Program-made: the position numbers and the translations under genes
NCBI GenBank assembly: GCA_002269645.1
Contig: NIVC01000854.1
Coordinates: 62,001 to 126,000 of the forward strand
Direction: 5' to 3'
Origin: Macrostomum lignano
Lineage: Eukaryota
DNA: 64,000 nucleotides
Shown: positions 6,077-35,734 of the stretch, piece after piece
Layout: every line of letters begins with the position of its first letter
Numbering within the stretch: the stretch's first letter is position 1
The notes under the pieces: generated by a model
What the model saw: the letters and a program-made list of their open reading frames with translations, nothing else
Databases searched by the model: none
What the model was told of the DNA's origin: nothing

Positions 6077-6727
6077 GATAATTTTATCTGCGAGTGGTAA
6101 AGAGTTGAAAGTGCTGAGGTCTGTCTCGAGTATGATACTCGCATTACTTTGGCATATTTATACGCACTTACTGAACCACTTGCTGAGAAATTTTAACTCT
6201 CCTGTTCCATTGATTCTAGCTCGCATAGACAAATTCTCCTGCTTGAGAACTCTTCAATGTTTGGCGTGGTTCTCATGGGAGTACCTACCTATGCGCTCTG
6301 CTAATAACTACGTGCAGCGCCTTTGGACAGGTTGTCACTCACTGGTAGTTAAATGCAAAAACACATACTGGACCTTGAATGCTACTCGCCTAACCCTCTG
6401 TCTGTTTGATTATATTTACACGAATAGAACAGACTGGTAGCAGGAAATGTGACTAAGTACATATTGTTGTGTTATACAGTAGTAGCTCGTATTTTAATTA
6501 GTTCTTCTCTTCTCAGAGGACGATTTGACAGAACATTTTAGGCGTCCGACTCTCGGCGCCGCAAAGTTCAGAATCACAGAATTAAATTAAATTTGGTCAG
6601 GGCTTGTTCTGCAATTCTCGCCCAAAATGAAGAACCTACCACGACACAGAGAATTTATATGCCTGGGGATGAGAAAGTCAGGGCCGCTGTACACATGCGT
6701 TCGTTTTTACCAACTTAAATAGATCAA

Positions 6728-8212
6728 CCTTTGAATCAACCGCCAACCATTGAATCAACCTCCAACCATTGAATCAACCTTCAACCATTGAATCAACCTC
6801 CAACCATTGAATCAACCTCCAACCATTGAATCAACCTCTAACCACTGAATCAACCTCCAACCACTGAATCAACCTCCAACCACTGAATCAACCTCCAACC
6901 ACAACCTCCAACCACTGAATCAACCGCCAACCATTGAATCAACCTCTAACCACTGAATCAACCTCCAACCACTGAATCAACCTCCAACCACTGAATCAAC
7001 CTCCAACCACAACCTCCAACCACTGAATCAACCGCCAACCACTGAATCAACCTCCAACCACTGAATCAACCTCCAACCACTGAATCAACCTCCAACCACT
7101 GAATCAACCTCCAACCACTGAATCAACCTCCAACCAGTGAATCAACCGCCAACCAGTGAATCAACCTCCAACCACTGAATCAACCTCCAACCACTGAATC
7201 AACCTCCAATTACTGAATCAATCTCCAACCACTGAATCAACCTCCAACCATTGAATCATCTTCCAAACAGTGAATCAACCTCCAATTACTGAATCAACCG
7301 CCAACCACTGAATCAACCTCCAACCAGTGAATCAACCGCCAACCACTGAATCAACCTCCAACCAGTGAATCAACCTCCAACCACTGAATCAACCTCCAAC
7401 CACTGAATCAACCTCCAACCAGTGAATCAGCCTCCAACCAGTGAATCAACCTCCAATTACTGAATCAATCTCCAACCACTGAATCAACCTCCAACCATTG
7501 AATCAACTTCCAACCATTGAATTAACCTCCAATTACTGAATCAATCTCGAACCACTGAAATAACCTCCAACAACTGAATCAACCTCCAACCACTGAATCA
7601 ACCTCCAACCATTGAATCAACCTCCAACCAGTGAATCAACCTCCAATTACTGAATCAACCTCTAATTACTGAATCAATCTCCAACCACTGAATCAACCTC
7701 CAACCACTGAATCAACCTCCAATTACTGAATCAATCTCCAACCACTGAATCAATCTACAACCACTGAATCAACCTCTAACCACTGAATCAATCTTCAACC
7801 ACTGAATCAACCTCCAACCACTGAATCAACCTCCAATTACTGAATCAATCTCCAACCACTGAATCAATCTACAACCACTGAATCAACCTCTAACCACTGA
7901 ATCAATCTCTAACCACTGAATCAACCTCCAACCACTGAATCAACCTCCAATTACTGAATCAATCTCCAACCACTGAATCAACCGCCAACCACTGAATCAA
8001 TCTCCAACCACTGAATCAACCGCCAACAACTGAATCAACCTCCAATTACTGAATCAACCTCCAACCACTGAATCAATCTACAACCTTTGAATCAACCTCC
8101 AACCACTGAATCAATCTCCAACCTTTGAATCAACCTCCAACCACTGAATCAACCTCCAACCAGTGAATCAATCCCAACCTTTGAATCAACCTCCAACCAG
8201 TGAATCAACCAC
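6728..8212. repeat. 19-bp minisatellite (TGAATCAACCTCCAACCAC), ~78 units
   Basis: Period 19 (6732, 6751, ...) across ~1.48 kb. Confidence 0.97.
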
Positions 8213-8559: not shown

Positions 8560-9492
8560 TCAAATGTGAGCAACATTCACCAAGTAGTGCTCATAGCAAC
8601 AGGCCCTTTGATCTCCAGTTATGGATTTGAAGAAAATCGAATAGGGGTTCTCGTGGAACTTCCAAGTACGGAAGCCAATCTTGAACAGGCCGAGCCACAC
8701 TCGAACCAGCTTCCCGTAGTCCGGTCGCTTGTACACCAGCTCGTCTGTGTGCGACTCAAACAGCAGCTGACGCACCCTGGACAGGCAACCCTCGCGCAGT
8801 GCAGCGTCAAAGCTGTCCCATTCCCACAGTTCGATGTCCACTTTAAGTATGTCAATCGGCGAGTTCTCGAAGCCGAACTGTTTAAATAAGGTACACAACG
8901 TTCGCATTGTCCAACCAGTTTTCTTCTGCACCGAGTTGCTGGGTCCAAGGCCGAGTTTGTAGAACCAGGATGTTTTCTTGCGCTGATGGTCTTCGACTTT
9001 GGTCATGCTCGGATCGAACATGTACACCCGGCAGTGGTAGGCGTCCGCTAGTTCGTCGTCGTACTCGAAGACGCCGTTGATGCCGAAGGAGAATGCTACG
9101 CAGGGTCGCCCGCTGACCCGTCGAATGTCGAATGGCGCTGTAAAGCAAACGTCCCAGCCTCCGTCGACCTCCTTACCAATTCGACGCCAATTGAAACACT
9201 CGATCTGCCTGTGCTGTATGATGAAGTAATATAGATCCTCCAGCTGCCGTGCGGTCATGTTGTGCATGGAGCTTTCAATCAGGGATAGAAAGCTGACATC
9301 CTTTGATACGATTTTTGACTCACTGATTAGCGGTGCTTGAGAGCTACCTGTTGCGCGGCTTACAGACAGCGTCGAAAAATTCTGGTTTAACATGAGCGCA
9401 CCGATCAGGATGATTGCTAGGGCCATCAGCCCAATCAGTGAATAGGTAATCTGACGTTTCGATTGCACTAATGAAGACAAAATAGGACGCAT
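8560..9492 (-). CDS. METTL24: METTL24-like (Methyltransf_22/FkbM-related) methyltransferase with N-terminal signal anchor, single exon, 310 aa
   Basis: Uninterrupted ORF; hydrophobic ITYSLIGLMALAIILIGALML; motifs DGGWDVC, AFSFGINGVFEYD, VYMFDPS, IDILKVDIELWEW, VRQLLFESH, CCYEHYLVN typical of this family. Confidence 0.82.
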   Translation of the reverse strand: MRPILSSLVQSKRQITYSLIGLMALAIILIGALMLNQNFSTLSVSRATGSSQAPLISESKIVSKDVSFLSLIESSMHNMTARQLEDLYYFIIQHRQIECFNWRRIGKEVDGGWDVCFTAPFDIRRVSGRPCVAFSFGINGVFEYDDELADAYHCRVYMFDPSMTKVEDHQRKKTSWFYKLGLGPSNSVQKKTGWTMRTLCTLFKQFGFENSPIDILKVDIELWEWDSFDAALREGCLSRVRQLLFESHTDELVYKRPDYGKLVRVWLGLFKIGFRTWKFHENPYSIFFKSITGDQRACCYEHYLVNVAHI

Positions 9493-14714: not shown

Positions 14715-15014
14715 ATCACATGCAAGTTAAGAATTACATCTAATTGTGCAAAATATTTACATGTTTAATATTTGATCAATTAGATTTGTAAGGTCTGTAG
14801 AGAAATTACAATTAATCAATTCAAGGTGCACTATTGGATTAAATTACATATTGTCTGTATTAAGTTATTGATAGAATTTTTACGACAATTACATGCATTC
14901 TTCTGGAGAAGTAACATCATAATCTTATAAATTACAGGTATCCTATCTTATATTTTTATCTCAATATTTTTATTTCACATGTAATATTCAAAACCCATGT
15001 TTTATAAGGAGCTT

Positions 15015-16702
15015 TGTAGCGTATTCACTAATATTATAAAAGTATTGCAGCTAGCGTATTATAACTACTGTATTCTAGAAACTTCCGCGTAAACACGCAC
15101 TTTCCATATTTGGCGTTTTGAATTCCCGCGCACCCCCTTTCTAGAAACTGCTTCTCGAACTTTCCGGATTCCGGAATGTTCCATCAACACGAATATAAAT
15201 ATACAGCACCCTAGCACGCAATTACTCAAACCCCGTTCTCTCTATTCTTTTCCACACGGAAAACAATCAAAGAAAAATTAAAGCAAACGAACCACCGCGT
15301 TTCACGCCTCAATTATTTTCGCTATTCTACAACTGGTCCGGTGAGGCGTCCAAAATTCATCTGAGTCCCCAGCAGGGGGCTAGGCCGTCGAAGTGCGTGT
15401 AAATATCCGTGTAAATACTGCCTGAATGTAGCATAACGCCATCATCGACATTGCCATCAACGCCATGCCTCATCGTCGTCTGCACGCGCCCGTCGTCCAC
15501 GCCACTACTGGATATAGCTACCGGATGCGTCATACATGTACGACACGATATTAACCTGATCGACGTAATTCTACAAACGTGGTATCGAAGTTGACACGGA
15601 ACTCATCGACGACAGACAGACAAATGCCTACACGGGTATTACCAGGCCGTTCGATAGAGTCTTCCGTGAACCCCACCAAATTCTACGCCAAAATAAGCCG
15701 AAATATCACCAGTCAACCAAGCTGCTATTGACCAAGGAACGCGCTGCTGAAACCTTCGGCGATCGTCTTTATATGACACCTTCCACGAGGTGATCGACAT
15801 CCCGAGGGGCAACCCAGCCTGTCAATCGGTTCGCCTTGTGCGCTCCATCAGCCATGCCCAGCAATATTCAGCGACCGCCCGCCGTCGTCCTCATATTATT
15901 CTCGGGAGTCTGCCTGCAATGCGAAAGGTCGTCCTGCCTGACGATCCGTCGTCCTGGAGTGTGGCTGAGCGTGCCACAAGCATCCCAAGTTCTCCTACCA
16001 GAAGCGCGTTGCGTGTACACCTGCTACGAGATGCCTACCGAAGCAGAGCGACAGCCCGCCTCGACTCACGGTGCACCGATCTTGTTCCGGGTGTCGTCTG
16101 TCTGCATCCTGGCACATTCCGTCTATGTACATTGCTATTCGGCCAATCGGGGGCATCGCAGTAAGGTCTGATTTGCGAAATGACTAATTAATCAAGCAGC
16201 TTGACTTCACCAGTAATAACGTTTCACTTATTATTGAATATGTACATCATCGCCCCTATACTGTAACAGTTTGAAATCTGGATGTACAAACGTAAATGTC
16301 CACCCCCCCCCCAATTCATCATCTAATGTATATATATTTTTTCCTGTACTTCTCCAGGTGACTCCGTCTCCGGCGGGGGAACTGTTGTAGCGTATTCACT
16401 AATATTATAAAAGTATTGCAGCTAGCGTATTATAACTACTGTATTCTAGAAACTTCCGCGTAAACACGCACTTTCCATATTTGGCGTTTTGAATTCCCGC
16501 GCACCCCCTTTCTAGAAACTGCTTCTCGAACTTTCCGGATTCCGGAATGTTCCATCAACACGAATATAAATATACAGCACCCTAGCACGCAATTACTCAA
16601 ACCCCGTTCTCTCTATTCTTTTCCACACGGAAAACAATCAAAGAAAAATTAAAGCAAATGAACCACCGCGTTTCACGCCTCAATTATTTTCGCTATTCTA
16701 CA
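15015..16702 (+). mobile_element. Non-autonomous LTR retroelement (317-bp LTRs, 1054-bp internal region without recognisable pol)
   Basis: LTRs 15015-15331 and 16386-16702 (TGT...ACA), one visible difference (AAACGAA vs AAATGAA); 4-bp TSD GCTT; PBS-like TGGTCCGGTGAGG at 15334; GGCGGGGGAA purine tract before the 3' LTR. Confidence 0.9.
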
Positions 16703-17599
16703 GCTTTAACTTTTACAAATTTTTTAGCGTCAATTGAAACCATTATTTGAATTGCTATTAGTTAATTTATTAATTTACCACAATATTTTTTAGTTCAAAG
16801 TAATTGTAGTTAACTTAATTGTAGTTAACTACTGTCTTTATCAAGTGTAAAAAGAACGAAAATTTTTTTATAATTGTCTACTAGTTTCTTTGTTTATTCA
16901 TTCTACATATTAATTTTTTATCATATTTAGAAGAGTTCTTACTTCATATTGTTATCGTCACATTATCACATACAACGATAATGATAGATCGAGTTGACTC
17001 CGAGATCGAACCGTGGTTTTTTTGAATATTCGCCTCTATAATAGTACTTGTTTCTACCAAAAATATAAATAAAAAAAACGTTTGAATTATATTGTATTTT
17101 ATTCATTTTTTGAAACATTAATGTCAACTTCATTCTTAAAGCAGTAAACATTTGTTTTAATATGCGTTGTAACATATTCCGTTACGGCGGGATTTTAAAG
17201 TACGATTTGGGAACTGGAACTGAAAAACCGGTCATTTCAACAACATTGTCTTTAAATTTACAAAAATCCAATAGAAAATATGCAGACAGTTTTTTGTCTG
17301 TGTAAATATATAAATTCATATATCGTGTTTGATGAATTAGTTTTGCGGTGTGGACAAACCTGGGACACAAATTTGTAAACGAGATGAACATTACGATACT
17401 TTTATGTGATTTTTGGTACAACTGTCATGCTAAAATTTATTTGTTTGCACACTTGTGTTGTGTAAGCCATAATTTTGCATTTCATTATATTGTATTTTTG
17501 TTGAAATCAAAATAGAAACATATTCTATGCTATATATGATAAAATTCTTAAAAATGTATCACTAGATAAGACTCCAGAGTCTCCAGTGAGATTTTAAAA

Positions 17600-20500
17600 T
17601 TTTATATTTCTACAATTTATATAATTAATTACCATAGATGACAAGGTATTTACTCCTGCCATTTACCCAAACCATCAGTACTATTATTGGGGTTGTGGGA
17701 AGATCTATTAATGAGATCATTGTTTCCTCTCGTTTGTATGCCATTTTGGATAGGCCTAGGCCTAATACAATAGTCAAATAGAAAAAAATAAAGTAAAAAA
17801 TAAACAAAAGTTCTGCTCTCTTGCAAAAAAGAGTAAAAATGCTCATTTTTCTACTGTCAGTAGCTTCTTCAAATGCAAAAAATACCTAGGCCCCCTATGC
17901 GAGACACTACACATAAACTAATTATTGCATTGTATTTAAATAGGAAATCTATGCTAGAAATAGCTTTCAAACCTTGTTGCTTCTTTTTCATAATGAAAAA
18001 AGCTATTTTTTAAATTGCTTATGGACATATAGTGTAAAAACTATAACCCAAGAAACCACTTTGTAGGAATACCTTTTTTGGATAGGCCTAAGCCTATGTT
18101 TATTGCAAATTGCAATCAAGACACTCTACAAAGCCCTGTTTGAAACCAAACACATTGAATCATTGCTGTTGTTAGAAATGTTTGAAAAAAAGAAAACAAA
18201 TTTCCACTGGCCAAATAAAAACATTAGGAAAAAAATTTCTTGCTGTTTTGTCTTACAACACATTCAACACACTTCAATTATTATTCTATTAATATCTAGG
18301 CCTAGTCTTTATTTGTGTTTAAATGGGCTTAATTTGCTCTAAATTTCATTTTTCCAAAACTGTTTTTTTCAAGTTATATCTAGTAGGGCCTAGCACAACT
18401 ATTTTTTTGAGGGAGGCAGATTCTGGAAGGTAAAATCCTAGGAGGGGGGGGCAGAGGCCAGAGGGGTTGGCTCTATTTTTGGCAAAAATTTGCTTGATCC
18501 CCCTTTGATTTTTTTAGGTCTTCACCTAAAGGGAGGCAACTGCCCCTTCCCCCCCCCCTTGGTTGCACCACTGGTTGCATCTTCACTTTGGTTTTTTTTT
18601 ACCAAAAAGTAGCCAAACTTTTATCTAATATAACTTGGCATATGTTGCATATAAAAAACTATTGTGTTCCATTTTGTCTAGTTTGCAATGTATATTTTGG
18701 TTTTTTTCTAGCTCATTTGCATATTGAATCTGTTTCAATTTTATGATAGGCACTATTTTTTATCTTTCTGCAACTTTCAGCCTTTTTCAGCTTGTCAGAG
18801 TCTCTACAGTAGACACTAGGCCTACTAGGCCTAATATTAATAAGCATTTCATTTTTTAGGCTAGGCACTATCTAAAAGACTGGTTAAAAACTTTTTTACT
18901 AATATTTTTATATAACTTTTATTAAACTAATTTCTATGCCTAATATGTCCTTTTTTAGCTTTTTATCATTTTATTTATAATAAAAATATATCCAAGCCCT
19001 AGTTAAGCCAAGGGTTGGCAGTTGGACAATATCATATTTTAAGATTTTTGAGACTTAAGATCTATAATAACCATATAAGCCTAAGCCTAATTTAGATTGT
19101 ATATTAATATATGCTAGATCCCAGGTCTAGGCCTAACTAATAGGAGAAAAAGTATAGCCATTGCCATATAAGACTTATTCTAAGACAAAAAGGTTTTTTT
19201 AGCTATGTATGGCAAAGTTGTAGGCTTACTCTTGTTTTTTATTCTAGAATTAATTATTAATATAGAATAGCCTAACAAACAAAAAATATATACTTTTGCA
19301 ATATGGATTGAGAAAAGACAATTATAAAAGAAAAACTTTAAAACTTTTTATTGGCTAAAAAAGGAAAAATAAGGTTAAGGCAGAAAATTTAAAATAGCTT
19401 TTTATTATTCTTTGCTTATTCTATATTGATGGTGTTGCATATAGGCCCCTAATATATTTTATATAAATTCACTTTTTGATTTAAATGTATACTATAATTT
19501 GAAAGTGACATATATCGAAGATTTCCTAACATATAATAAAGGTAGGCTATTGAACATTTTTCAGTATATATTGGCATATGTCTTAGGGCTAATGCCTATC
19601 TTTCAAGATGATCTTATTACTGGCATTAACTGTGGTAGAGCTGCTTTTTCTTTCCTTATAATTTATAATTAGTTGCCAAGTTGTTATAATGATTTTTATA
19701 ATACTTTTACTTTTTTAGATATGAGTATTGCTGGTAGTATATATCCTTATCATCTACTAGTAGCATATATATATACTGTACTTCTAGCCTGAGTGGTCTT
19801 ATGGCACTGTCTATTCTATCCCTATACTCCTCTAAATATTTTTATTTTCTCAGTCCTGGGTTTCTTGGAATCAGAGGGTCATAGCTTACTTGCTAGGTAT
19901 TCTATCCTGTAGAGGTTTCTTAGACTCTAAGTCTATACTATTCTACCCTGTGGTATGATTTTTTTCTTTCTAAGACAATTTCTCATATTCTAAATCTAGA
20001 TATCTCATTCTCTAAGAACAGATTGAATTCTCCTAATCTTGGGGCTATTCCTAAGTCACTATCTACAACTCAAAAAATAAGTAACACAAGAGCAAACACA
20101 AGCCCTGAGGCTGATTGACTTTTGTTTTCAAATAGAATGCCTGGAGCACATGAAGTAAAAGTCTTTGAAAAGCTGAACAAGAAGTGGAAATAAAATGAGT
20201 TTATTTTCTTGGCATTAAACTGGCTTCCTTTTATAGTAAAAATTTTGCTTTAATATAACAACAGTAGTATTTTAAAATGAAGTTCTCTAAGAAACTTTAT
20301 AATAAAAATTGAGGCTTATTACACATATTTGCATATATATTAGGATCAAATGCAGTAACTTTACATAAAATATATTACATACAACCCATAGTTTGGATTG
20401 TGCATTAGTGTATAGCAGGTTTAATGCTAGAAAAACGACAAGACCTTGTTTGTATGCTGCATCTGTGCACCAATACAAACAATACAATAAACAATGTATC

Positions 20501-21100
20501 CACTGTGTCATGTATGCTGGGATATACCCTGATATATGCTGAAAAATGTTAAGACCCTTGTTGTATGCCAGGTATACAACACTATCAATATGGATTCATA
20601 GAACAAAGAATATTAAATAATTAAAGATTAAATGATTATTAAATGATTAAATGATTATTGAATAATTAATAATCAAAGAATAGTAATTAATTAGTATTCA
20701 TTAAAAAAAACAATTTAAACATTGTACCTTTAAAAAACTTATATATTTCTCAGTTTTTCAATAAAAGTATTTAAAGTACTTCCTTAATAATTGTCTCTTC
20801 TCAGTGCATGTTGAAACATGGTATAATTTTTAAGTTTGTTACTCTGCATTATTAATAAATTCAAGAATGAAAAAAGTGTAAAACTTTGGTGTACAAAGTT
20901 AAAAACATTTTTAGGCCCAGGTACGCTGGTATATAAATGTGGTCTTGTACTTTTTCTTTCACTGCACCCAATGAGTACACTAATACACAATCCAAACTAT
21001 GACATGTATGCAGATATGCCATAAAAATAGGCCAAAAAATCTAGCTTTGAATCGGTTTATGGGCAAATTATTATTGATAAAATACTCAGCTAACTTTTAA
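17600..21100. other. AT-rich, CpG-depleted, TAGGCCTA-enriched domain upstream of RBM22
   Basis: About 6 CpG counted in 17641-21060; 7 exact TAGGCCTA between 17751 and 19135. Confidence 0.8.
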
Positions 21101-21125: not shown

Positions 21126-22962
21126 ATGGCTCACTCCAAAGGCACCAACACTTACAATCGACAGAACTGGGAGGATGCGGAGTTTCCCATCCTGTGCCAG
21201 ACTTGTCTGGGAGAAAATCCCTACTTAAGAATGATGAAGGAGCGCTATGGTAAAGAGTGCAAGATTTGCACCAGGCCATTCACCGTGTTCCGCTGGTGTC
21301 CCGGGCCGAAGTCGCGATTTAAAAAGACAGAAGTCTGTCAGACCTGCGCTAAGATTAAAAATGTCTGCCAGACCTGCATTCTGGACCTGCAGTACGGACT
21401 GCCAGTTGAGGTTCGGGATAAAGCGCTTAAGATTAACGAGAAACTGCCTAAATCCGATGTGGGGCGCGAGTATTATATGCAGCAGGTTGAGCGAGTGCTG
21501 GCTGACGACCCAACTGTGCCATGGCAGGTGAGAACTGTGGACATTGCACTGTGTTTTAATTTATTCATAAATCATGCAATGAGTGCAATGCTTGTTTTTG
21601 ATGCTATCACGTCATTTAACCAGTCATATACTCACCAATCTAGGCATTCACACCCTCCTTCACTTGCTCATAGTTATTCACACCCTCCTTCACTTGCTCA
21701 TAGTTATTCACTTCGATATTCTCTCACTTACTCAATCACTCAATCACTTACTCAATCAATTACTCACTCCATCACTCAATCACTCACTCAATCACTCAAT
21801 CACTCGCTCACTCACTTACTCAATTACTCACTCACCCACACCGTGTAAACCAGTTATTATTTATTAAAAATAAAAACAAATATGCTCCAAAAATATACTC
21901 GTATATAACAACCTGAACACAGAACCAGGCTCTGACTGCCGGCGCTCTGACGGCCGGCGGCGGGGGTGGCGGCAGCGGCGTTGGTGGCAGCGGCGCTCTG
22001 GCAGCCCTAGCAGGCGGCAGCGGCGGCGGCGGTAAGGCTCCGGCGCCGTCCTCGGAGATGCTGCACCGGCTGGCCAGAACTACGCCATATTATAAGCGGA
22101 ACCGGCCGCATATTTGCAGCTTCTACGTTAAAGGCGAATGCAGACGCGGCGAGGAGTGTCCGTATAGGTGAGCGGTTGGATTTTGCCCCTGTGCCACTCA
22201 CCTATGCGCCCTGTGCTACTCACCTGTGCACATGTGCCCCTGTGCTACTCACCTGTGCGCCCTGTGCTACTCACCTGTGCGCCCTGTGCTACTCACCTGT
22301 GCACATGTGCCCCTGTGCTACTCACCTGTGCGCCCTGTGCTACTCACCTGTGCGCCCTGTGCTACTCACCTGTGCCCCTGTGCTACTCACCTGTGCCCCC
22401 TGTGCTACTCACCTGTGCCCCTGTACTACTCACCTGTGCCCCCTGTGCTACTCACCTGTGCCCCTGTGCTACTCACCTGTGCGCCCTGTGCTACTCACCT
22501 GTGCGCCCTGTGCTACTCACCTGTGCCCATTCACTAAAAGTTCTATTTACCAGGTAACGAACGACATGACAGTGTTGAAAAACCAAAGCTTTCACCTGTC
22601 CATCCCACAGGCACGAGCGCCCAACAGATCCCGACGACCCGCTGTCCGAGCAGAACATCCGCGATCGCTACCACGGCACAAACGATCCCGTGGCTAACAA
22701 GCTCATGACTAAATACGCCACTATTCAACAGCAGCGAGAGGAGGCCGCGCTGGCTGCTCTGGAGGCTGGGCCGTCGTCAGAGTCATCGTCCGCGGCTGCG
22801 GCTTCAACTTCGAAAGCTTCAGCATCGGGTAGTTCGGCTTCAACTGAGCCGCTACCGCCAGGCGTTCCCAGCCTGCTGCCAGGGCTGTCATCGGGCGGTG
22901 GTGGCAGCAGCAGCTACCCCAGCCAGGACCCGGCCAGAATGGGCGGCTTCGCCAAGCGATGA
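21126..22962 (+). CDS. RBM22: Pre-mRNA-splicing factor RBM22 (Slt11/Ecm2-Cwc2 family) lacking the RRM
   Basis: Exons 21126-21527, 21923-22167, 22611-22962; [26 protein letters not shown]..., CCCH finger [44 protein letters not shown] and terminal [10 protein letters not shown]. Confidence 0.95.
21640..21840. repeat. (CACT/CAAT)n-like microsatellite in RBM22 intron 1
   Basis: Direct inspection. Confidence 0.85.
22186..22527. repeat. 20-22-bp minisatellite (CTGTGCTACTCACCTGTGCGCC) in RBM22 intron 2
   Basis: Direct inspection; explains the spurious ORFs at 22168-22697. Confidence 0.95.
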
Positions 22963-24849
22963 TTTATTTATAGACACCTGCTTTGCTGCCCGACTAAGGG
23001 TTGCTGTGTGCTGACACGTTTAATTGGGGGAGCGGAGTGTCTGTCTGTTTACTTACCCATTGTTTATCTATCTACGTAGTCAAAATAAGACTTTGCGAAT
23101 TTGAACTTTGGGGATTTGTGAAGTCACCCGCTGAGCTCATGGAATCACAGAAAGGACCGTTAAGTTAAGAGGACGTTCATTGGAAGTTCAAATAAACAAG
23201 AAATTACAAATACTTTTCCAAAGCTATCGAAAAACTTTATTTCATCAATACATCTTGGCTGAATTAAAATCGGGTCTTCAGAATTTTTCCTTTGTTTTAC
23301 ACTCAACAGTCTTTGTCAGCTAAAGCTCCATCCGTGTGTTGTTATTTGGTTTTTCTCGCTAATATTCAATAAAGCTTCATTAATGTGCTCTTTTATTGTG
23401 ACGCGTTTGTTATTACGCAAAATTTTCAATTTATTCTAAGCCCCTACTAAAATAATAATTAACATCTATGTAAAAATTGTCAATAAATGTTATTCAATAC
23501 ACAGCTAGTAGTGTCTTATGGCCCTAGTTGATCCACAAGTTTAAAATACTGAACTGAATTTATTTGCACGATTAAAAATATGCAGCGTCCTATAACTTGA
23601 GTAGTCCTTGTTTAAAAGTCAATATAATCCATGTAAAGATATAATGTCTACATGTATTGTAGCAGTTTGGCGTCGCGTGCAAAATAAAAAACAATGCGGT
23701 TTTCACTTTCCTTAATGAAGCCATATAAGTATGACTTATATGTCAAAACAGTATTACGTCCATGACTTGCACGCTCATTTTTTATTTGAGAATCCACTAG
23801 TTTGTACATGCTGTGTATATTGATGCATAAATATTTACATAGGTAAGTCTTAGGGACTATAGACATAAGGAGGCTCTTTATATTGCTTGTTCTGGTTCTA
23901 GAACCAGAACCAATTTGTAAAGTATAACTTTTTGTCTCCTAAACTAGAGGGATATTGAGGCTTTAAAATTGTGATTATTGAATGGCAATAGCCAAGAAGA
24001 AAGTGAAAAATCATGCAAAGTGAGGCTGTTAAGGCAGTCAAACATTCAACAAAATTAAATAGTTATACTGCTTTTTTTCTTGGAAATCCGAACCGATTCT
24101 GGTTCGAGAATCGATTGTCGTGAAGAGGCTCAAGCTATAACTGTTTGTTGCCTTCAATTTTCAGCATAGTACAGTTTGTTAAACAATAAAACTTCAAGTA
24201 CCGATTATAACATTTTTCTACTTAAGTAAAAACCGTACAATACTTTAATTTTTACCACAATTTCATTTGAATATATATAAAGCATCCACCAGCATTAATA
24301 TAAATAGTTATATTGATTGGACAGGCGTCATATCGAGGATTTAAATTTTAAACAATTTTTTTTTAACTCATCATTGAGATCGATAAGGCCCTAGTATAAT
24401 CAGTCTGCACTATACGTGAACGTGTACGGTGTACAGATGTATCTGTCATATGCGTTGTTGGCATGGCGCAAGTCGCAGTGTTGATAGTCAATCAATGATG
24501 ATCTTTCATAAGTTCTGTACATTACATTTACCCCTCTAGTGTCATTTCCTAACCTATTTAGGCTTACCTTACCTCATACTAGGCCTAAACGTTATCGAGT
24601 TGAGTCGAGTGTTCTAACTGGAACCCTAGGCCTAACATATTTTATCATAGAAATTTTTTTTGGTTCGGTTGATTCTGGTTCCTTTTATCAAATTTAGACC
24701 TACCCGATGTGTATTTTGAAATAAAAAATTGAACAAAATACAAATACTAGGCCTATGACATCTTTTGTCTGATAAACTATGTCACCTTTTCACTCATTTT
24801 AATGGGATTTTAAAACGAAACTGAGTATAACATAGGGAATTGCTGGACG

Positions 24850-27000
24850 AAAGAATGCCATGATTGTGGGCATAAGATTAGAAATAAGCCTAGCTTATAA
24901 TACTTGTCAATTGTCATAATACTAGTACTTTTGTAAGTAACTATACCCATAAACCCATAGAATACTCTTAAGTCTAATGTATTATGTAGTTACTAGGCCT
25001 AGGCCTAATATATTATAATATTATAAGCCCTACCTAGGACAGGACAGGTAACTAGGCCTACTAATAACTATATACTTTGTTTCTTGCCCTTGGCTAAAAA
25101 TCAGAACTTTTAAAATAAAAGTTTGAGACAAGCAAGAGATATATAATATTAATATAGGCCTATATATATGGTTTTAGTTGATAGGGCCTATTGCATGCAC
25201 TATATAGTTGTAGACATAGATTAGATATAGCCTCACATTGCCTGTACCTAGGCCTACCCCTTATAAAATGCCCAGAAATATATAAATAATATATAGTAAT
25301 AATATAATAATATTAGTATATTTTATTATGAATATACTAATATTACAAATAATAAATTTGTATACTCTATAGGCCCTACATAAATTATATATATCTTATG
25401 TACTTAAATGTATTCTTCAATCAAGTGCATATTTAGCATCTTTTTAGGCCTACCTAGGCCTAGGGACCTATTTATTTATGTCTGACACCTGGCAAGCTTA
25501 GCAGTTTTTGTTAGGTGACAAGGTAGCTAAGGAGTATATTTAAAAATTAGCCCCTATCAACAACAAACTATAAAATTTAAATAGGGATGCTTAAGATAAA
25601 AATAGAAATTTAAAAAAATTGATATAAAAAACAAATGGTCAAAAAAGAAAAACAGAATAAGAAATAAGTTGTAGCTCTGGAGCGCTGCATACCAGTCTCT
25701 ATTTTTCTCCCCCTTTTCTCTGTTTGGCCATATCCCTAAGCTTCCATGTACTTATATATAGTTAATTGTCATTATGTGACTCTATTTTGGTATTCTCTCA
25801 GCCCCTGTTTGTGTCATTATAAAATAGGCTACTTGCTTGTTAAAATAAACCTTGAGTTTCTTTATGCCAACTTCATGGCACAACAAAGGCAATAATTAGT
25901 TAAAACAAACGAGGATAGACCTTTAAAGCAAAATGTGTCAAATTTATATTTAAAAAGTACAAATGCACAATAGTTACTTGTAAGATAATAATCACACATT
26001 CACATATATATTGAATGAAAATGAATATAGTAAAAACAAATTTGACAGGAATTCAAATTTAGCTTTCTAAGAAAACTATCTACCATTTATAATCTATTAA
26101 GTCATCCAAAATCATATAGTGCAACAAGATGAAATTGCTTTGTGTATGACAAAAAAGTTGCATAATTCCATTGGGCATTCAAAATACAAGAATCCTATTC
26201 TAGAAAGCAAAAAAATAATTTTCACTTCAAATTCATATGCAGCTATGTTGCATTTTTGTCAGAAACTAAGTCTATCAATGGAATAAAAGTTATGTATGTA
26301 ATCTATTTTGACTTCACTTTGAAGGCTGTTCAATTTAATGTGTTCAATCTATTTGTTCAATTAACTATAAATGGAGTTTATTCAATACTTTTTCTATAGC
26401 CTATGATCTTTAAAGGCAAACTTATTTATTGCTTAGCTATTTTTGCATGATGTCAAAAATTTGGGATTTTTTTTCTGGACCAAGGCTCTATCGCTACTTG
26501 GACTCAAGTAGCCAAGTAAGTACATTTGGGAATAAAATAAAATCAGATGTTGCATTGACTTTTCTGATGTCATTTTTTGTTTTTTTAGAGCCAGCCATAT
26601 GAAGCAAACATCTTTGAAGCCATTCCTGATTATATTTTTGGAACAGTAAGTTTTATCTTTGCTTTTTTGGTATCAAGTCTAGATAGAGTAAGTTGCCATA
26701 AATGAGACCATTTTAATTGCCACACTGTTTTAGACACGATTTTGCATTGGATTGGCCCAATGGGGCTGGCCAATGGCTTTGCCGTACATGCTGAAACAGG
26801 CGCTCTACTCCTCAGGTTTGTTGATTTGTTCATCTGATTGCTGACTGCTGTGATTGTCTACATTTTACTGTTGCTGAAATTTGCTTACTATACTACTAAG
26901 TAGTTAGCATGTTAACCAACTACACTTGAAAGTTGTCTCATATTACAATTGAGTATTCCACTGTAGTATTGCACTCAAATCCTCAGTTGCTAGACCAGCC
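24850..27000. other. Second AT-rich, CpG-depleted, TAGGCCTA-enriched domain covering the 5' flank and exons 1-3 of ABHD16A
   Basis: About 7 CpG counted in 24841-27000; 10 exact TAGGCCTA between 24581 and 25462. Confidence 0.8.
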
Positions 27001-30000
27001 TCCCAGATCCTCAGTTGCTGGGCCAGCCTCCCAAATCCCCAGTTGCTAGGCCAGCCTCCCAGATCCCCAGTTGCTGGGCCAGCCTCCCAGATCCCCAGTT
27101 GCTGGGCCAGCCTCCCAGATCCCCAGTTGCTGGGCCAGCCTCCCAGATCCCCAGTTGCTGGGCCAGCCTCCCAGATCCCCAGTTGCTGGGCCAGCCTCTC
27201 AGATCCCCAGTTGCTGGGCCAGCCTCCCAGATCCTCAGTTGCTGGGCCAGCCTCCCAGCGTGTCAGTTGCTGGGCCAGCCTCCCAGATCCTCCTTTGCTG
27301 GGCCAGCCTCCCAGATCCCCAGTTGCTGGGCCAGCCTCCCAGATCCTCAGTTACTGGGCCAGCCTCCGAGATCCTCAGTTGCTGGGCCAGCCTCCGAGAT
27401 CCTCAGTTACTGGGCCAGCCTCCGAGATCCTCAGTTACTGGGCCAGCCTCCGAGATCCTCAGTTACTGGGCCAGCCTCCGAGATCCTCAGTTACTGGGCC
27501 AGCCTCAGAGATCCTCAGTTACTGGGCCAGCCTCCCAAATCCTCAGTGGATCCATTCTTTCAATATAACAACGCTGCCCTACCACCGCAGCGGACCAGCT
27601 GTCACTCCGCTGCCAGTCGGCTCTGTCCTACTCCATCGGTGCCGTCTGCCTCCTGCTGTGCGCCGCCTGCTGCCGCACCCTGGGTCGCAGCCTCAATCCC
27701 ACCTATTCGGCTTTTACGCAATCGTTGCGCAAGGCTCGACGCGGCTTCACAGCCGAGGACAAAGAATCTCTGTCCAAGTACGACTTCGACTTCTGGGCTT
27801 GGCCAGTTGAGTTCAAAGCGACTCAAACTCAGCCTCTTCAGCCTGCTTCTGGGCCAGCCGAACCGGTGCCTCATCCGTTGGATTGGTTGCTAGGGCCGGC
27901 CAGTCGGTTGCTAGTGCAAACAATCGGAATCAGAATGACTTATCCCGGCTGCACTGCGCTGATGAACGCGGTGGTTCGACCGATGCTGCAGCAGACCAGG
28001 GCCAGATTGCAGGTTGGTTTGTGAACTTTCCAAGAATTGATAATCACTAATTTAAATCTCTTCCTTTCTTAGAATAGCTGTTTCTTCGAAAATTAATTTT
28101 TTTTATTTGTTTTAGCTAAATTCGTCTTTTTTAAATAGTTTTCTTTCTCTATAAATGTTCTCTTGCAGAAATTTTTGCTACTTAAAGTAGTTTGGCTTTA
28201 AAAAAGCATTTTATAAAAACATTATCAATTGTCAGAAATTGTTTTCTAGAATTAAGAAATTTTGCTTTATCGAAAAGGTTTTTACTACAATACTTAAATC
28301 TAAAGTATTAAAAAATTAAAATTAAAGTATTAAAATTAAAAAAGTAAATTAAATTATGTCTGATATGGTTTTTTTTCAAAGACAAGATAAGGCTTATTTT
28401 ATTGGCTCTTACCCCCAAGCCTAAACCCTTAAACTCCACACAGAACCCCTGCCCCTGCCCCGCCATCCAATTTTTATTGCCTTCCTCGGTTTTTCCAGCC
28501 TAAATCTGCCATGTACATTCAGTGGCCAATGTACATTGCTGCTGAACCAATTAGCAAACTGTTTACACGCCTAGCCTGCAAGCTTCAGCCGCCTTTATTC
28601 TTATAAAATAGCTTATGTATTCTTTACTGCTGCTGAACTGAAAGTAGACGGCTTGACTTAACTTGACTTAGCTGCAGGGGGCGTCCGGCGGATGCAGCGA
28701 GGAGGCGGAGGAGACCGCCCATTCCGCTAGCCCCTGGCGACCAACGACTTCCGTTGAAGTGGTGTCGCTCAGGGGGACCCGTCGGTCTCGCCTGCAGCGC
28801 GGTCCTCCTCACCGACGGTGGGGAAGAAATCAGCTCGTCCGGTGTCCCTGAGGTACCGGGCGAGCAGCGGGATGCTCTCGGGCCTGCAAACGTCGGAGAG
28901 AACCGGGTTTGGCCCGAGGTGAGTAAGCCTGGCCCTGGTGAAAACCGGGCAGTGGCAGATAAAATGCTCGGCGTTTTCACTGCCTGAGCGGCAGAAGGGG
29001 CACCGCTCCTCGGGTACTTGGCCCTGAAGGAAGCGGTGGCGAGAGAAGCAGCCATGCCCGGAGAGGGCCATGCTAACTGCTCTGAGGTCTCTGCGGTTGA
29101 GCCTCAGGAGGGCTCTACGCAGGAGAGGAGAGGGACAGGGGACGGCAGCACGGGATTGCCTACAATTCCGGGTGTCGTGCCACCTGCGGAGATGCTCGGA
29201 GTCAGCCCAGCGCTTAACGCGGGAATTGATCACCGAGGCGGGGATGGGGGCACCCGGGCCCGGCCCCAATAGCGCGCCGGCGGAGCCAGCCTTGGCCAGC
29301 AGGTCAGCGCGCTCGTTGCCGAGGAAGCCGGCGTGGCCCGGGATCCATCTGAGCTCCACCTGGTTGCCTAGCGCAAGCCCGTTGAGCTGGGTGTTGCAGT
29401 CCAGGACGGACCTGGAGCTGGCGGTGCTGCGGCAGAGGGCCCGAAGGGCTGCTTGGCTGTCAGAGTGAAAAATAAATTTCCGGCCGCTAAGCTGCCTTCG
29501 GCGCAGCTCTGCCGCGCAGGAGCTGATGGCAAGCACCTCGCTCTGAAAAACACTGGAGTTGAGCCCAGTGTGCTGGGAGTAGTTCCACACCACTTCTCCC
29601 TTGAAGAAGACGCAAGCTCCGAAGCCTGAAAGACCATGCCTCATAGAGCCGTCAGTGTAACAGTGGACTTCAGAGTCGCTCCAGCTGTCACTCGCCTCGT
29701 GTCGAGGCTGAATGGTGACCTTATACCTTTGGCTCAGGAGAAGGGTGGCTGGGATCGAGTCCGTGAGGATGTTGAGCCCGCCACACTCCTCGAGAGCCTT
29801 GAGGCAGAGGTCAGAGTGCGGGATAAGCGACCGCTTCTTAAAGGCCCGCACTTTCTTGAAGGCCACCCCAGCATCCAGAAGACGCCGGGTGCTCTTCGCC
29901 GCCTCTCCTTTGATATAAATATCCAAAGGAGGGGCACAGAGGAAGGCATTCATGCCTTCAAAAGGAGTAGAGGGTGGAGCGCCCATAGTCATGCGGCAGG

Positions 30001-33000
30001 CTCTGCCCTGGATTTTGTAGAGAGCGTCGAGGTTGCTCTTGACGCTCAGGCCGCTAGCCCACACGAGGCTGGCGTAACTGATCGAGGGGCGGATGATGGC
30101 AGTGTAAATCCACCACAGCTTCCTGGGGGTGAGCCCCCAGGTGGTGCCCACGGCGCGCCTGATCTGAGCCAGTACAGCCAGGGCTTTTTTGGCTTTAGTT
30201 TGAATGTGCGGAGTCCAGTTAAGCCTGTGGTCCAGAGTGAGGCCCAGGCAGCGGACCTGCTTCTCCATGGAAATATTCTTTCCATAGAGGGTGAGGGGCT
30301 TAATGGTCCAGAGCAGTTTGTTGGTAAACATGACCGCTGTGGTTTTCGACTCTGAGAGTCTAAGGCCACATTGGTCTGCCCAACGCTCCGCTCGTCCCAG
30401 AAAGCCCTGCAGAAGGTCTCTGATGGTATCAACCGAGGGGCCCGCGCATATCGCGGTCACATCATCGGCATAGCCCACCTTGAGAATGGGGTCGTGGAGA
30501 TCACTGCAAAGCAACTCATCCATGACCATGTTCCAGAGAACGGGGGTGAGAACGCCGCCCTGGGGGCCCCCTTTCAGGACAGGCACCGAAAGAGAGCTGC
30601 CGCTCAGGTGGGCCACAACAGTGCGGTTTCGGATCATGAACATGATCCACCGGACAAGGTGAGGGTGCGTGGCCCTGGATTCCAGGGCTCTGCAAAAGGC
30701 CTCGAAGATGACGTTGTCGAAGGCCCCCTCAATGTCCAGGAAAAGCGAGAGGGCAAAGCCGCTGCCAAGAACGGCCCTCTCCAGGAAGTCAACAATGACA
30801 TGGAGAGCACTCTCGGTTGACCTGCCCGCGCGGAAGGCGTGCTGGTTCTGCGAGAGTGGGAAGCGCTTCAGCTCGACCGAAAGTAGGCGCCAAAGCACCA
30901 GTCTCTCGAGGAGCTTGAGGCAGAAAGAAGTGAGGCTGATAGGCCTGAAGGCCTTCACCGATTGGTAGTCGCTCTTTCCAGGCTTGGGGATAAAGACCAC
31001 CCGGGCCTCTCTCCATGCAACTGGTACATAGCCCAGCTCCACACAAGCTCGAAGGAGACGACAGAGCAGGTCCAGGAAGCGGTGGTTTTTCACCGCCTCG
31101 TGCAAGAACGCTGGGTAGATGCCGTCGGGCCCAGGCGCCTTGAACGGGTTAAAGGACCTTGCCGCTCTAATAATGCGGTCTTTGGTGATCATAGACTTTG
31201 CTAGGCCTTGCCCTCCCACTGTGTGGTCGGGCGGGCCCTGCTGAGTCGGAGATTTAGGGAAAAAACTGTTGAGCATGAGCTCTAGAGTCTCTTCCGAACT
31301 CTCTGTGACCGAGCCGTCAGGTCTCTTCACAACAGAGAGTTTAGAAAAACGGTCATTAGTGAGTGCCTTAACCACGCGGGCTACGGGGCGAGAGCCCTCA
31401 AGCCCTTCGCAATATTGGCGCCACTTGGCCGTCTTGGCCCTTCTGACTTGGCCCTTAAACTCGTGGATCGCACGGGTATAGGCCTCTCTGTCAGATGGGT
31501 CTTTGGTTTTGAGCGCTCGCCTTTGGAGGGTCCTGGCTCGGCGCCGAAGGGCCCCGAGCTCTGGGTTCCACCAGGGAGCAGATTTCTTGCCTTTATAGGC
31601 CTTTAGGGGGCAGGCTGCTTCAAAGGCAGTGGTGATCGCCCCGCCCAGGGAGGAGGCGAGATCGTCCACCACCTGGCAGTCAGAGAGGTCACTGGGGGGT
31701 CAAGATCCCGAAGGCCGCGGCTCAGCTTCGAGCCAAAGGCGGCCCAATCGGTGTTCCTGACGTTCCGACTCCAAGTGACCTTAGGCTTTTGCTTGGTCGG
31801 CCCAATGCAAAAGCGGATAAAGCGGTGGTCCGAGAGCGAGTCCTCGTCCCACACTCGCCAGCCCGTAACTGCGGAAAGCAGTCCGGGTGAGGCGATGGTG
31901 GTGTCGATGACTTCGGCCCACCGCCCATTATTGAACGTTGGTGCATTGCCCACGTTACAGAAGTTGAGGTTAGTGCTGCTGACATAGGCCAGCAGCTCCT
32001 CGCCTCTGCTATTGATGTTCTTGCTGCCCCAATGCAGGTGGTGTGCGTTCACATCCCCTGCAATGAGCAGCTCGAACCGATGGGACGCAGCATAGTCAGT
32101 AAGGTTGACTAACGCGTCGCAGACAACTGGGGCATCGCCCGGGAAATAGGCAGAAGCTACCAGCACAGGTTTATTGGGAATGAGGTTATTGATTTGAACA
32201 ACACAGATGTCCCCAGTCGAGAGATCAGGTCTCATCCATGCCTCAAAAGCTTTTGCAGCAAAGACCAAGATCTTGGGCGAGGCTGAGAGCCCGCCATGCA
32301 AAAACAGTGGTAGCCAGATGGCACATTATTTGGCTTACCTTTAGTCATCCAGGGCTCCTGTACGAAGACCAGGCCCGGAAGCTGTTGCTCTGCCGTGCGC
32401 ATCAGGTTGACCGACGCCGCCACGCAGTGCTGGGTGTTGATCTGCAGACACCAGGTAGTCGCTGGCATCATTGCAGATCGGATGTTGCAGCCGCCAGGAG
32501 TTCCTCCTCCTCCTCGGCGCTCACCGGCTTCGGGTCGGGGTCGCCGGTGTCCATGGGCTCTTCTTCAGCAAAAGGCCCCCGATTGGCCGGAAGGCAGTAG
32601 GCAGCGTTCGCCGCCCTTTGCCCACCATCCATGGGGTCCTCCGCCTCAGATTGGCCCAATGCCCTGGAGCAGCCAGCCGCCTGGGCAGGCGGGTCCGTCT
32701 CCAGTCGGCCCTGCCCCGAGGGGTTGGGCCCAGCTGGGACGTCCCCACCCTCCCTGGACGAACTGGTGCGCCTAGGCGTCCCGGCGACCTCTCGCCTCAG
32801 CTGGGAGATTTTGGCGGTACGGACTGCCTCAGCTGCACGCTGGTACAGGCCGCGCCGCTTGGTGCTGCGCGCCGGGCGTCGGTCGCCTCCGCCCTCAGCA
32901 GCGCGCTCAGCTTTGCCCGCGCGGCCGTGCTGCCGGGCAGGGCGGTTTGCTTTGGCAGTCTGAGCAGAGGCTTGCGCCTCGGCCCCGGCCGCCTCCGCAT

Positions 33001-34996: not shown

Positions 34997-35055
<59 letters not shown>

Positions 35056-35091
35056 TTTAGTGTCTGTCTGTCTGTGATTCTCTGTCTGTCC

Positions 35092-35155
<64 letters not shown>

Positions 35156-35734
35156 TTATGTCTGTCAGTCTGTTTTAGTATCTGTCTGTCTGTGTTTGTC
35201 TGTCTGTCTGTCTGCCTGCCTGCCTGTTTCTGTCTGTCTGCATGTGCCTGTCTTTATTTCCTGGTGTATGCATAATATTAGTCTCCTGTTTGCCTGTCCT
35301 TCCCTACACTGACCCGATTCCCCACCCCACTTCACTCCAGGGCCTGCCATTCCCCGACACGGAGCGCGAGTTCATAGAAACTGTGCTCCAGTTTGCCCAG
35401 CAACGCCTCGGCTTCGAACCGGGCGACACGGCCCTCCTAGCCTGGTCCATCGGCGGCTACTCGGCCACCTGGGCGGCCGCCAGGCAGCCGCAGCTGCGCT
35501 ACCTGCTGCTGGACGCCACGTTTGACAACATCGAAGAGCTGGCGGTGAAGGCCATGCCCAAGTTTGCCAGCTGGTTTGTGCGGTACGCCGTGAGACACCA
35601 CCTGCGCCTGGACAATGCCGAGCAGCTGTGCCGGTGAGCTGCCTGCGGCTGTGTGCCTGTATCTATCTGTCTATCTATCTATCTATCTATCTATCCATCT
35701 ATCTATCTATCTATCTATCTATCTAGCTAGCTAG

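Follow-up and report, generated by a model that had tools for sequence, protein, structure and literature searches.

CpG-void blocks directly upstream of two conserved genes in the flatworm Macrostomum lignano: possible traces of germ-line methylation

Genes of the locus and their CpG content

The stretch of Macrostomum lignano DNA analysed here, called the window in the following, comprises 64,000 nucleotides and contains two conserved genes on the plus strand, each of which is preceded by a CpG-poor block (positions are those of the window; blocks, flanking segments and repeats are given without strand). The first gene is RBM22-like, as indicated by an STL11_N domain (E 5e-29) and the RBM22 zinc finger (zf-CCCH_RBM22, E 2.3e-14), and in the spliced model the exons join in frame at AG/GT boundaries. 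Exon 1 (21126-21527, 134 codons) is 75-88% identical to animal RBM22, exon 2 (21923-22167) encodes a Gly/Ala run and the CCCH zinc finger, and exon 3 (22611-22962) contains the stop codon; an RRM is absent throughout the gene model. The exons retain CpG, as had been noted in a first-pass annotation of this DNA, with an observed/expected ratio (o/e) of 0.73 in exon 1, about 1.1 in exon 2 (measured on the provisional bounds 21925-22163) and about 0.9 in exon 3 (provisional bounds 22590-22962). The same is true of the AT-rich 3' UTR and 3' flank of the gene (22963-24848), where the o/e is 0.79-0.84.

The second gene is predicted from its sequence to encode an ABHD16-like lipase. Exon 1 (26447-26515) carries the start codon and is followed by exon 2 (26589-26645), exon 3 (26734-26815) and exon 4 (27591-28009, start approximate), which upon splicing match positions 2-125 of the 125 positions of Pfam ABHD16_N (E 4.4e-30). 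Exon 4, which matches ABHD16_N with an E of 1.2e-13, holds 31 CpGs against 35.9 expected (o/e 0.86), and further plus-strand exons are marked by colinear tblastn matches at 34715-34954, 35341-35634, 40746-40892 and 41994-42083. The later introns of this gene have a CpG o/e of 0.5-1.1. All in all, CpG is kept in the exons, distal introns, 3' flank, retrotransposons and satellites of the window, and the coding exons, with an o/e of 0.73-1.12, include many synonymous CpGs. A third gene, represented by a Methyltransf_22 ORF on the minus strand (8560-9492), has no such block upstream, which we count against the idea that CpG loss marks gene 5' domains. Rfam and tRNA scans of the whole window gave no match.

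Two CpG deserts at gene 5' ends

The desert upstream of the RBM22-like gene (D1, 17395-21053) is non-coding and AT-rich (30% GC). It contains 5 CpGs where 82 are expected (o/e 0.06); even if the o/e of the whole window, 0.74, is taken as the baseline, so low a count has a Poisson P of about 3e-20. Only CpG is depleted; indeed, GpC has an o/e of 1.55 and CC/GG of 1.40. The interval 17600-21100, in which the first-pass annotation had seen a shortage of CpG relative to about 60 expected, holds 6 CpGs (17731, 17900, 19516, 20436, 20924 and 21053) against 79 expected by our count (o/e 0.08), together with 124 GpCs (o/e 1.56). AT-richness can be excluded as the cause, as had been argued: a 171-nt G-run/C-run island within D1 (18395-18565) has 50% GC and 8 GpCs, with no CpG against 10.4 expected, and the equally AT-rich segment on the left side of D1 (16706-17394, 27% GC) keeps its CpGs, of which there are 19 against 12.4 expected (o/e 1.53; GpC o/e 0.64). 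D1 is thus a sharply bounded, CpG-specific anomaly 5' of a conserved gene. The desert had been described as ending at the RBM22 start codon, which is correct as to the side of the gene; the true end is the CpG at 21053, which leaves 73 nt to the ATG at 21126. Among the words reported as abundant, CTAG (23 against 9.7 expected) and TAGG (26 against 9.1) are so, while TATA (61 against 52) is not. Nor does 17600-21100 bear out the reported excess of TpA, as its o/e is 0.97 and TpA/ApT is 1.08, mildly above the 0.85 of the window.

The association with a gene 5' end is replicated once, by the block that immediately precedes the neighbouring ABHD16-like gene (D2, 24849-26491, 29% GC), which is unrelated to D1 in sequence and has a like signature: 2 CpGs (25683 and 25910) against 35 expected (o/e 0.06), with a GpC o/e of 1.71. 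The start codon is not the limit of D2, which ends 45 nt inside the first coding exon, where the next CpG lies (26492). The CpG-free state extends further into the first three short introns of the gene, whose unique parts (324 nt) have no CpG against 7.9 expected (P 0.003); all CpGs within 26516-26978, the region of introns 1-3 and exons 2 and 3, are exonic. The two deserts border on the first coding exons of conserved genes that share a strand, and they constitute the whole sample, two blocks in one 64,000-nt window. Alignment of D1 with D2 (blastn with words of 7-9, nhmmer) gave nothing significant, only low-complexity or chance matches, as did alignment with the rest of the window. Since the blocks cannot be aligned and yet have a common signature, a shared process is suggested rather than shared ancestry. 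A model trained on D1 indicated that, CpG and TAGGCCTA words aside, this common signature is mostly AT-richness.

Both blocks look old. In D1 an inverted duplication (19145-19582, partner arm 20521-20957) has decayed to 63% identity over 458 nt (E 7e-28), and a foldback, MITE-like element with decayed terminal inverted repeats (20372-21017; arms 20378-20412 and 20976-21010, 89% complementary) lies just upstream of the RBM22-like ATG. Across the blocks, inverted duplications are down to 63-76% identity and micro tandem duplications, 17 in D1 against 1.8 in shuffles, are 9-fold more frequent. The LTR element that adjoins the blocks has LTRs that are 99.4% identical.

Clusters of the word TAGGCCTA

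Seven copies of TAGGCCTA had been pointed out in D1, and they are indeed found there, against 0.03 expected. In the whole window the word occurs 17 times against 0.75 in dinucleotide shuffles, and none of the 17 copies lies outside two clusters, 0.9 and 1.4 kb long, which are located at the edge of each desert that is farther from the gene. Cluster 1 (17751-19135, plus strand) consists of 7 exact copies, some of them paired as doublets (AGGCCTAGGCCTAA), and lies 2.0-3.4 kb before the RBM22-like ATG, with nothing conserved in the flanks beyond a C at position -1. Cluster 2 (24580-25462, plus strand) comprises 10 exact copies that precede the ABHD16-like ATG by 1.0-1.9 kb; it starts about 270 nt before the CpG loss of D2. 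The core AGGCCT is extended to exact TAGGCCTA in 17 of 17 cases in the blocks and in 0 of 19 outside, with no conservation of the flanks. The word is also clustered upstream of a SIX-family exon on a contig of another animal; as the DNA is CpG-normal there, the enrichment is a feature separate from the loss of CpG, and it is left unexplained by methylation. The clusters may be protein-binding sites, and that they set the desert domain is speculation.

Other sources of the word were considered. The non-LTR element of the window was rejected, as its 3' tail is an AAGTC-type repeat and not TAGGCC, and viral contigs with TAGGCCTAGGCCTAAT appear to carry unrelated phage regulatory repeats. A literature search retrieved nothing relevant on TAGGCCTA or AGGCCTA in connection with Macrostomum.

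Origin of the CpG loss

The explanation that we tentatively favour, and that may well be correct without being the probable one, is that the non-coding DNA 5' of the two genes is, or formerly was, densely methylated in the germ line and has lost its CpGs by deamination. D1 and D2 would be long-resident non-coding DNA, partly transposon-derived, whose CpGs were densely methylated in the germ line, at present or over a long past time. Deamination of 5-methylcytosine would then have eliminated about 94% of the CpGs that the base composition predicts and left GpC and other G/C words in place, while the coding exons, distal introns, 3' flank, young LTR element, non-LTR retrotransposon and satellites would have been spared as non-targets. 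From the CpG-specific loss, its sharp limits, its location next to the 5' ends of two genes and the weak hypermutability of CpG in the repeats of the window, all of which are direct observations, we infer three things: methylation as the cause, the germ line as its site, and the 5' domains as its target.

Methylation decay is plausible because M. lignano, among the few flatworms to do so, retains both DNMT1 and DNMT3 and has low levels of 5mC (PMC11292947, PMC9246332). The location of the methylation is not known (PMC9246332) and its pattern is unmapped (PMC11292947, PMC9246332, PMC10658182); in our literature search, the M. lignano genome papers did not treat CpG or methylation patterns. In the repeat pairs of the window 10.5% of CpG positions differ, against 6.4% of other G/C positions, which is a hypermutability of about 1.6-fold. 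This value fits the window-wide o/e of 0.74 and not the 0.06 of the blocks, which consequently need a local cause. In the old internal duplications no double-transition mismatch is more frequent than TG/CA, with 5 cases compared with 1 for the AC/GT control, a weak signal. No excess of deamination products was found in D1 and D2, where CpA/TpG has an o/e of 1.05-1.08 against 1.05-1.18 in controls; the excess expected at 30% GC is small. Canonical gene-body methylation was rejected, as the exons and later introns are undepleted and the loss lies upstream of the ATG. The slippage of CpG-free founder motifs was also rejected as a sole cause, since micro-repeats cover only 11% of D1 and have many different units.

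A less likely explanation, although one that deserves to be weighed, is that the blocks are relics, namely the oldest surviving non-coding DNA of the locus, from which regulatory content keeps transposons out. Their CpG loss would record an earlier and heavier, perhaps genome-wide, methylation, and the CpG-normal surroundings would be either coding or younger, repeat-derived DNA. Several observations agree with this. The blocks hold decayed old duplications and many slippage products, and their neighbours are young or repetitive: the LTR pair is nearly identical, non-LTR copies are 95-96% identical, and satellites fill the introns. In addition, the short 5' introns of the ABHD16-like gene are CpG-free while the large, repeat-laden ones are not, and CpG hypermutability in repeats is weak today. 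However, the exons of these ancient genes keep their synonymous CpGs and the 3' UTR and flank of the RBM22-like gene are normal. As a past genome-wide methylation should have depleted exons and 3' flank as well, those CpGs count against a relic origin.

It is improbable, in our judgement, that the blocks are CpG-free for functional reasons. They would then be promoter, enhancer or outron DNA in which the CpG-free, AT-rich state is itself maintained, for example to stay hidden from proteins that read or methylate CpG, and TAGGCCTA would provide candidate sites for a regulator or boundary protein. The position of both deserts directly upstream of start codons points in this direction, as do the strict extension of AGGCCT inside the blocks with unconserved flanks, which is the pattern of a discrete site, the clustering of the word upstream of the SIX-family exon, and the absence of CTCF from flatworms (PMC10658182). 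On the other hand, selection against every CpG across 1.6-3.7 kb is unparsimonious, and the slippage and decayed repeats of the blocks are those of neutrally drifting DNA.

An intrinsic difference in composition is slightly more doubtful still. According to this explanation no CpG was lost in place, and the blocks would be remnants of a mobile element that was itself poor in CpG and rich in AT, or of DNA gained by horizontal transfer. The dinucleotide signature of the blocks is distinct from the rest of the window, D1 contains the foldback element and inverted duplications, and one ORF weakly matches THAP9_C (E 0.028). Nevertheless, D1 is not a single repeat family, a finding that the first-pass annotation had named among those that would speak against a targeted domain: the window contains no further copy of it, and neither terminal repeats nor remnants of coding sequence were found. 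In particular, terminal inverted repeats were found neither between any pair of block edges nor in the CpG-normal flanks, and target duplications are likewise missing at the block edges. The ORFs of at least 50 aa in D1 and D2 gave only sub-threshold Pfam matches, THAP9_C and Replitron_HUH (E 0.1), neither of which was reproduced when the three plus-strand frames of D1 were scanned whole, and the longest ORF of D1 (79 aa) has no credible Pfam match. Moreover, insertions would not be expected to give two unrelated blocks that end at first coding exons, one of them reaching into introns.

A RIP-like process, that is, duplication-triggered C-to-T hypermutation, had been proposed alongside methylation decay and is very unlikely to have made the blocks. 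Their AT-richness and sharp bounds, a TpA/ApT of 1.05-1.08, slightly above the window, and the old inverted duplication in D1 would all agree with it. RIP is recognised by a clearly raised TpA/ApT together with a (CpA+TpG)/(ApC+GpT) below about 1.03, and the latter index is 1.29-1.31 in the blocks against 1.32 in the window. CpA and TpG are not depleted and TpA has an o/e of about 1. D2 lacks any duplicate within the window, as does the greater part of D1, and the real repeats of the window do not show such mutation. No case of RIP is known from animals. Equally hard to credit is an artefact, be it a wrong consensus or wrong base calls at methylated CpGs or the mis-joining of foreign DNA, for which nothing specific speaks: M. 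lignano genes and repeats flank the blocks on both sides in one continuous sequence with intact exons between them, and base-calling errors would not take about 94% of CpGs and spare adjacent reading frames.

Comparison with known CpG landscapes and implications

Mosaic methylation of invertebrates such as Ciona, sea urchin, oyster and annelids places CpG-depleted methylated domains beside CpG-replete unmethylated ones, and transposons are often unmethylated (summarised in PMC11292947, PMC9246332). The present locus alternates as sharply between CpG-depleted and CpG-replete DNA, its transposons keep their CpGs, the animal has both DNMT1 and DNMT3, and the depleted domains accompany conserved housekeeping-type genes. 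However, the known depleted domain is the transcribed gene body including its exons, with the promoter spared, whereas here depletion affects the DNA that precedes the start codon, and in one case also the first short introns, but neither the exons nor the distal introns. Furthermore, an o/e of 0.06 is far below the usual values of about 0.3-0.6. Like vertebrate CpG islands, the deserts show a contrast in CpG over kilobases that is tied to gene 5' ends, with 5mC deamination as the presumed cause of the CpG-poor state, but the polarity is inverted: the 5' flank is void of CpG and the remaining locus is CpG-normal. Unlike vertebrate bulk DNA, the M. lignano sequence as a whole is only mildly depleted. 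The RIP blocks of fungi (Neurospora, Leptosphaeria) are likewise sharply bounded AT-rich blocks among gene-bearing DNA of normal composition, but D1 and D2 miss the RIP indices, are not repeats and have lost CpG only.

The position of D1 and D2, 5' of the first coding exon in conserved genes, is also the one expected for outrons. Trans-splicing affects 30% of M. lignano genes, with enrichment of conserved genes (PMC8629364). Outrons have not been described as void of CpG, however, and no spliced-leader acceptor motif YTNCAG was found within 1.5 kb upstream of the RBM22-like or the ABHD16-like ATG, a motif present at only 44% of the known acceptor sites of this species (PMC8629364).

If the blocks are footprints of methylation, the target would be the 5' flanks of conserved genes rather than gene bodies or transposons, which departs from the invertebrate norm. 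This would also explain the low bulk 5mC, as the targets have almost no CpG left. If instead they are merely old backbone DNA, they still mark ancient unique sequence within a genome that is 75% repeats. A more general picture, which is bold and more likely wrong than right by a wide measure, is that M. lignano, and perhaps other flatworms, possess inverse CpG islands, domains of kilobase size 5' of conserved genes that would be specifically targeted by germ-line methylation or otherwise purged of CpG, with gene bodies and transposons spared; their upstream edge would be marked by oriented CTAGGCCTA clusters bound by a putative boundary or targeting factor, in a phylum without CTCF.

A possible parallel for the clusters is the DRE of Drosophila (TATCGATA), which is bound by DREF and BEAF-32 and forms homotypic clusters at housekeeping promoters and boundaries. 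Both are exact palindromic 8-mers with unconserved flanks that recur many times in about 1 kb of DNA 5' of broadly expressed genes. They differ in that the M. lignano word is another one, its clusters lie 1-3.4 kb from the start codon and not in the core promoter, and it is so far a candidate site. Stable transgenesis is available in M. lignano alone among flatworm models, and the TAGGCCTA clusters are a candidate cis-element for reporter assays.

CpG-void blocks upstream of two conserved genes

CpG is almost completely lost directly upstream of the RBM22-like gene. In the interval 17600-21100, described as a CpG desert in the first-pass annotation, 6 CpG are present against 79 expected from base composition (observed/expected ratio, o/e, 0.08), with GpC occurring 124 times. 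The CpG-poor run itself extends over 17395-21053 (D1) and holds 5 CpG against 82 expected, with P ~3e-20 even when the window-wide o/e of 0.74 is taken as baseline. As that annotation had also held, the loss is no side effect of AT-richness, because a 171-nt island of 50% GC within D1 is free of CpG (10.4 expected) and the left flank (16706-17394), AT-rich like D1, is replete with it (19 against 12.4 expected). The return of CpG in the RBM22-like exons (o/e 0.73-1.12), the seven copies of the word TAGGCCTA in the interval and the abundance of CTAG and TAGG (2.4- and 2.9-fold above expectation) were likewise confirmed; the claimed TpA excess was absent, with a TpA o/e of 0.97 and TATA only 1.2-fold over expectation.

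A similar situation is present at a neighbouring gene. The block D2 (24849-26491), directly upstream of the ABHD16-like gene, holds 2 CpG against 35 expected, and its 3' end falls within the first coding exon of this gene, which lies on the same strand as the RBM22-like gene. The symmetrised dinucleotide profiles of D1 and D2 are nearly identical (o/e in D1 and D2, respectively: CG, 0.06 and 0.06; GC, 1.55 and 1.71; CC/GG, 1.40 and 1.43; GA/TC, 0.77 and 0.72), and the two blocks are not alignable. The short introns 1-3 of the ABHD16-like gene (within 26516-26978) are also CpG-free (324 nt, 0 CpG against 7.9 expected, P 0.003), and its later introns have a CpG o/e of 0.5-1.1. A CpG-void block is thus found directly 5' of both conserved multi-exon genes in the window (2 of 2); no such block precedes the single-exon Methyltransf_22 (FkbM-like) domain ORF (8560-9492, minus strand). 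This recurrence makes a real observation more interesting than one block would be.

Both blocks look like old, drifting, non-coding DNA. The 3' half of D1 holds an inverted duplication, now at 63% identity, as well as a foldback element whose terminal repeats have decayed. Micro tandem duplications number 17 in D1 and 6 in D2, against 1.8 and 1.1, respectively, in dinucleotide shuffles, an excess that the CpG-normal flanks do not share. About 0.7 kb to the left of D1, a short LTR-type element (15014-16705; CpG o/e 1.32), whose 321-nt direct repeats (15014-15334 and 16385-16705) are 99.4% identical, is a young insertion. Between them, the 27% GC stretch 16706-17394 displays an anomaly opposite to that of the desert (CpG o/e 1.53, GpC o/e 0.64). 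A G-run, its complementary C-run (GGAGGGGGGGGCAG ... CTGCCCCTTCCCCCCCCC) and the direct repeat AGGGAGGCA mark an island midway along D1 (18405-18560) that may be hairpin-forming or G-quadruplex-prone.

Possible causes of the CpG loss

In the one 64-kb window covered by the whole analysis, diverged repeat pairs carry mismatches at 10.5% of CpG positions versus 6.4% of other G/C positions. This weak, ~1.6-fold hypermutability is in line with the o/e of 0.74 for the whole window and cannot yield 0.06; the blocks therefore underwent either far stronger CpG-specific loss than their surroundings or selection against CpG. Since deamination of 5-methylcytosine is, to our knowledge, the only well-established animal mechanism of such specificity, local germ-line methylation of 5' non-coding domains is tentatively put forward as the best explanation. 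In the germ line, D1 and D2 would be, or would long have been, densely methylated at CpG, and deamination of 5-methylcytosine would then strip CpG from them. Direct sequence support is thin: the commonest double-transition mismatch of the old duplications is TG/CA, though at just 5 against 1, and neither TpG nor CpA is in excess in the blocks. The mechanism is probably familiar methylation-driven CpG decay, in an unfamiliar location.

The main rival reads D1 and D2 as leftovers from a past period of heavier methylation that survive only in insertion-free regulatory DNA; it is considered less likely, and the CpG-normal state of the exons and the 3' UTR speaks against it. A canonical footprint of gene-body methylation is ruled out by the CpG kept in exons and 3' DNA. 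Indeed, synonymous CpGs are many in the RBM22-like exons, and o/e is ~0.8 in the 3' UTR and flank of this gene and 0.86 in ABHD16-like exon 4. The blocks may contain outrons, though the sequence gives this reading no support, with no YTNCAG acceptor found within 1.5 kb upstream of either ATG. Rfam and tRNA scans of the window found no known RNA genes in the blocks. That the desert is a single repeat family, which the first-pass annotation had named as contrary to its own reading, or an obvious transposon is not supported: within the window, neither block has a second copy or terminal repeats at its edges, and Pfam searches of the ORFs of both blocks and the plus-strand frames of D1 found no coding remnants. 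The RIP-like process also proposed there is disfavoured by a (CpA+TpG)/(ApC+GpT) of 1.29-1.31, equal to that of the window (1.32), and a TpA/ApT of 1.05-1.08.

The TAGGCCTA word

TAGGCCTA occurs 17 times in the window against 0.75 expected, confined to clusters at the distal edges of D1 (17751-19135, 2.0-3.4 kb from the RBM22-like start codon) and D2 (24580-25462, 1.0-1.9 kb from the ABHD16-like start codon). AGGCCT is part of TAGGCCTA in 17 of 17 cases within the blocks and in 0 of 19 outside. The copies are frequently doublets, such as AGGCCTAGGCCTAA; C precedes 13 of the 17 and G follows 4 (Fisher P 0.005, post hoc), which suggests a shared orientation, and no other conservation was found around them.

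A metagenome scan with TTGGATAGGCCTARGCCTA returned 14 contigs, about the chance expectation. Six of them (L002, L004, L005, L011, L012 and L013) are poor in ORFs and animal-like, apparently from another animal, and hold either 3-7 TAGGCCTA apiece or (TAGGCC)n runs, a strong over-representation (3-7 copies per 1.4-14.6 kb). In L011 (4497-8980), an SD-domain exon of the SIX family has copies at 0.55-4 kb on its upstream side. As CpG is normal in the contigs with TAGGCCTA, the word is a separate feature rather than a consequence of the loss of CpG. It could provide binding sites, act as a boundary or be the scar of an insertion. The stretches 17735-17764 and 18068-18096 share with copies in L012 and L013 a longer context, GCCATNTTGGA-TAGGCCTA(G/A)GCCTA, which may be chance and whose GCCATNTT part resembles a YY1/PHO-type site.

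Genes and repeats in the window

The RBM22-like gene has three exons on the plus strand (21126-21527, 21923-22167 and 22611-22962), with AG/GT at all junctions. Its 332-aa product contains an STL11/RBM22 N-terminal domain (E 5e-29), the RBM22 CCCH finger and a conserved C-terminal YPSQDP motif; no RRM was found in the gene model, which may be a truncated paralogue of true RBM22. Both introns are mostly satellites (CTCACTCA-type; 22/43-nt unit). The ABHD16-like (phosphatidylserine lipase) gene (26447-42083, plus strand) starts with exons 26447-26515, 26589-26645, 26734-26815 and ~27591-28009, whose spliced N-terminus matches Pfam ABHD16_N positions 2-125 of 125 (E 4.4e-30); further colinear exons lie at 34715-34954, 35341-35634, 40746-40892 and 41994-42083. 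Upstream of the RBM22-like ATG a TATAAA occurs at a distance of 194 nt, and upstream of the ABHD16-like ATG at 83 nt; where DNA is this AT-rich, it is at most a hint. An ankyrin-repeat ORF is located at 1700-2416 (minus strand).

The ABHD16-like introns are full of satellites, and one of them holds a retrotransposon. This antisense non-LTR element (28650-34400, minus strand; endonuclease, RT and RNase H; 61% GC, CpG o/e 0.72) ends in an AAGTC-type repeat at its 3' tail. Where the two align, its 967-aa ORF (28769-31672, minus strand) shows 100% identity to a protein of M. lignano in UniRef, with the next named matches also from M. lignano. A partial inverted copy (51418-52585, plus strand) is 95-96% identical, and a second RT-bearing element lies at 61509-62816 (minus strand). 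In the 28-nt minisatellite of ABHD16-like intron 3 (26979-27547), the first 10 units are CpG-free and the last units have a CCTCCGAGATCC variant, by which a new CpG has spread within this young array. The window has 46% GC and a heavy micro- and minisatellite load, both in keeping with the M. lignano genome. The satellites are unusually dense at 6600-8000, 34930-36550, 38400-39100, 43940-44760, 45400-45840, 46030-47230, 47100-51180, 53500-55500 and 57880-58075. The arrays have periods of 4/8, 14, 17, 19, 24, 30 and 47 nt; three of them belong to a 30-nt CCCAGTAAGCCTTGACATCTCAGCAATTCC family, and those of TCTG/TCTA type at 53.5 and 55.1 kb are inverted.
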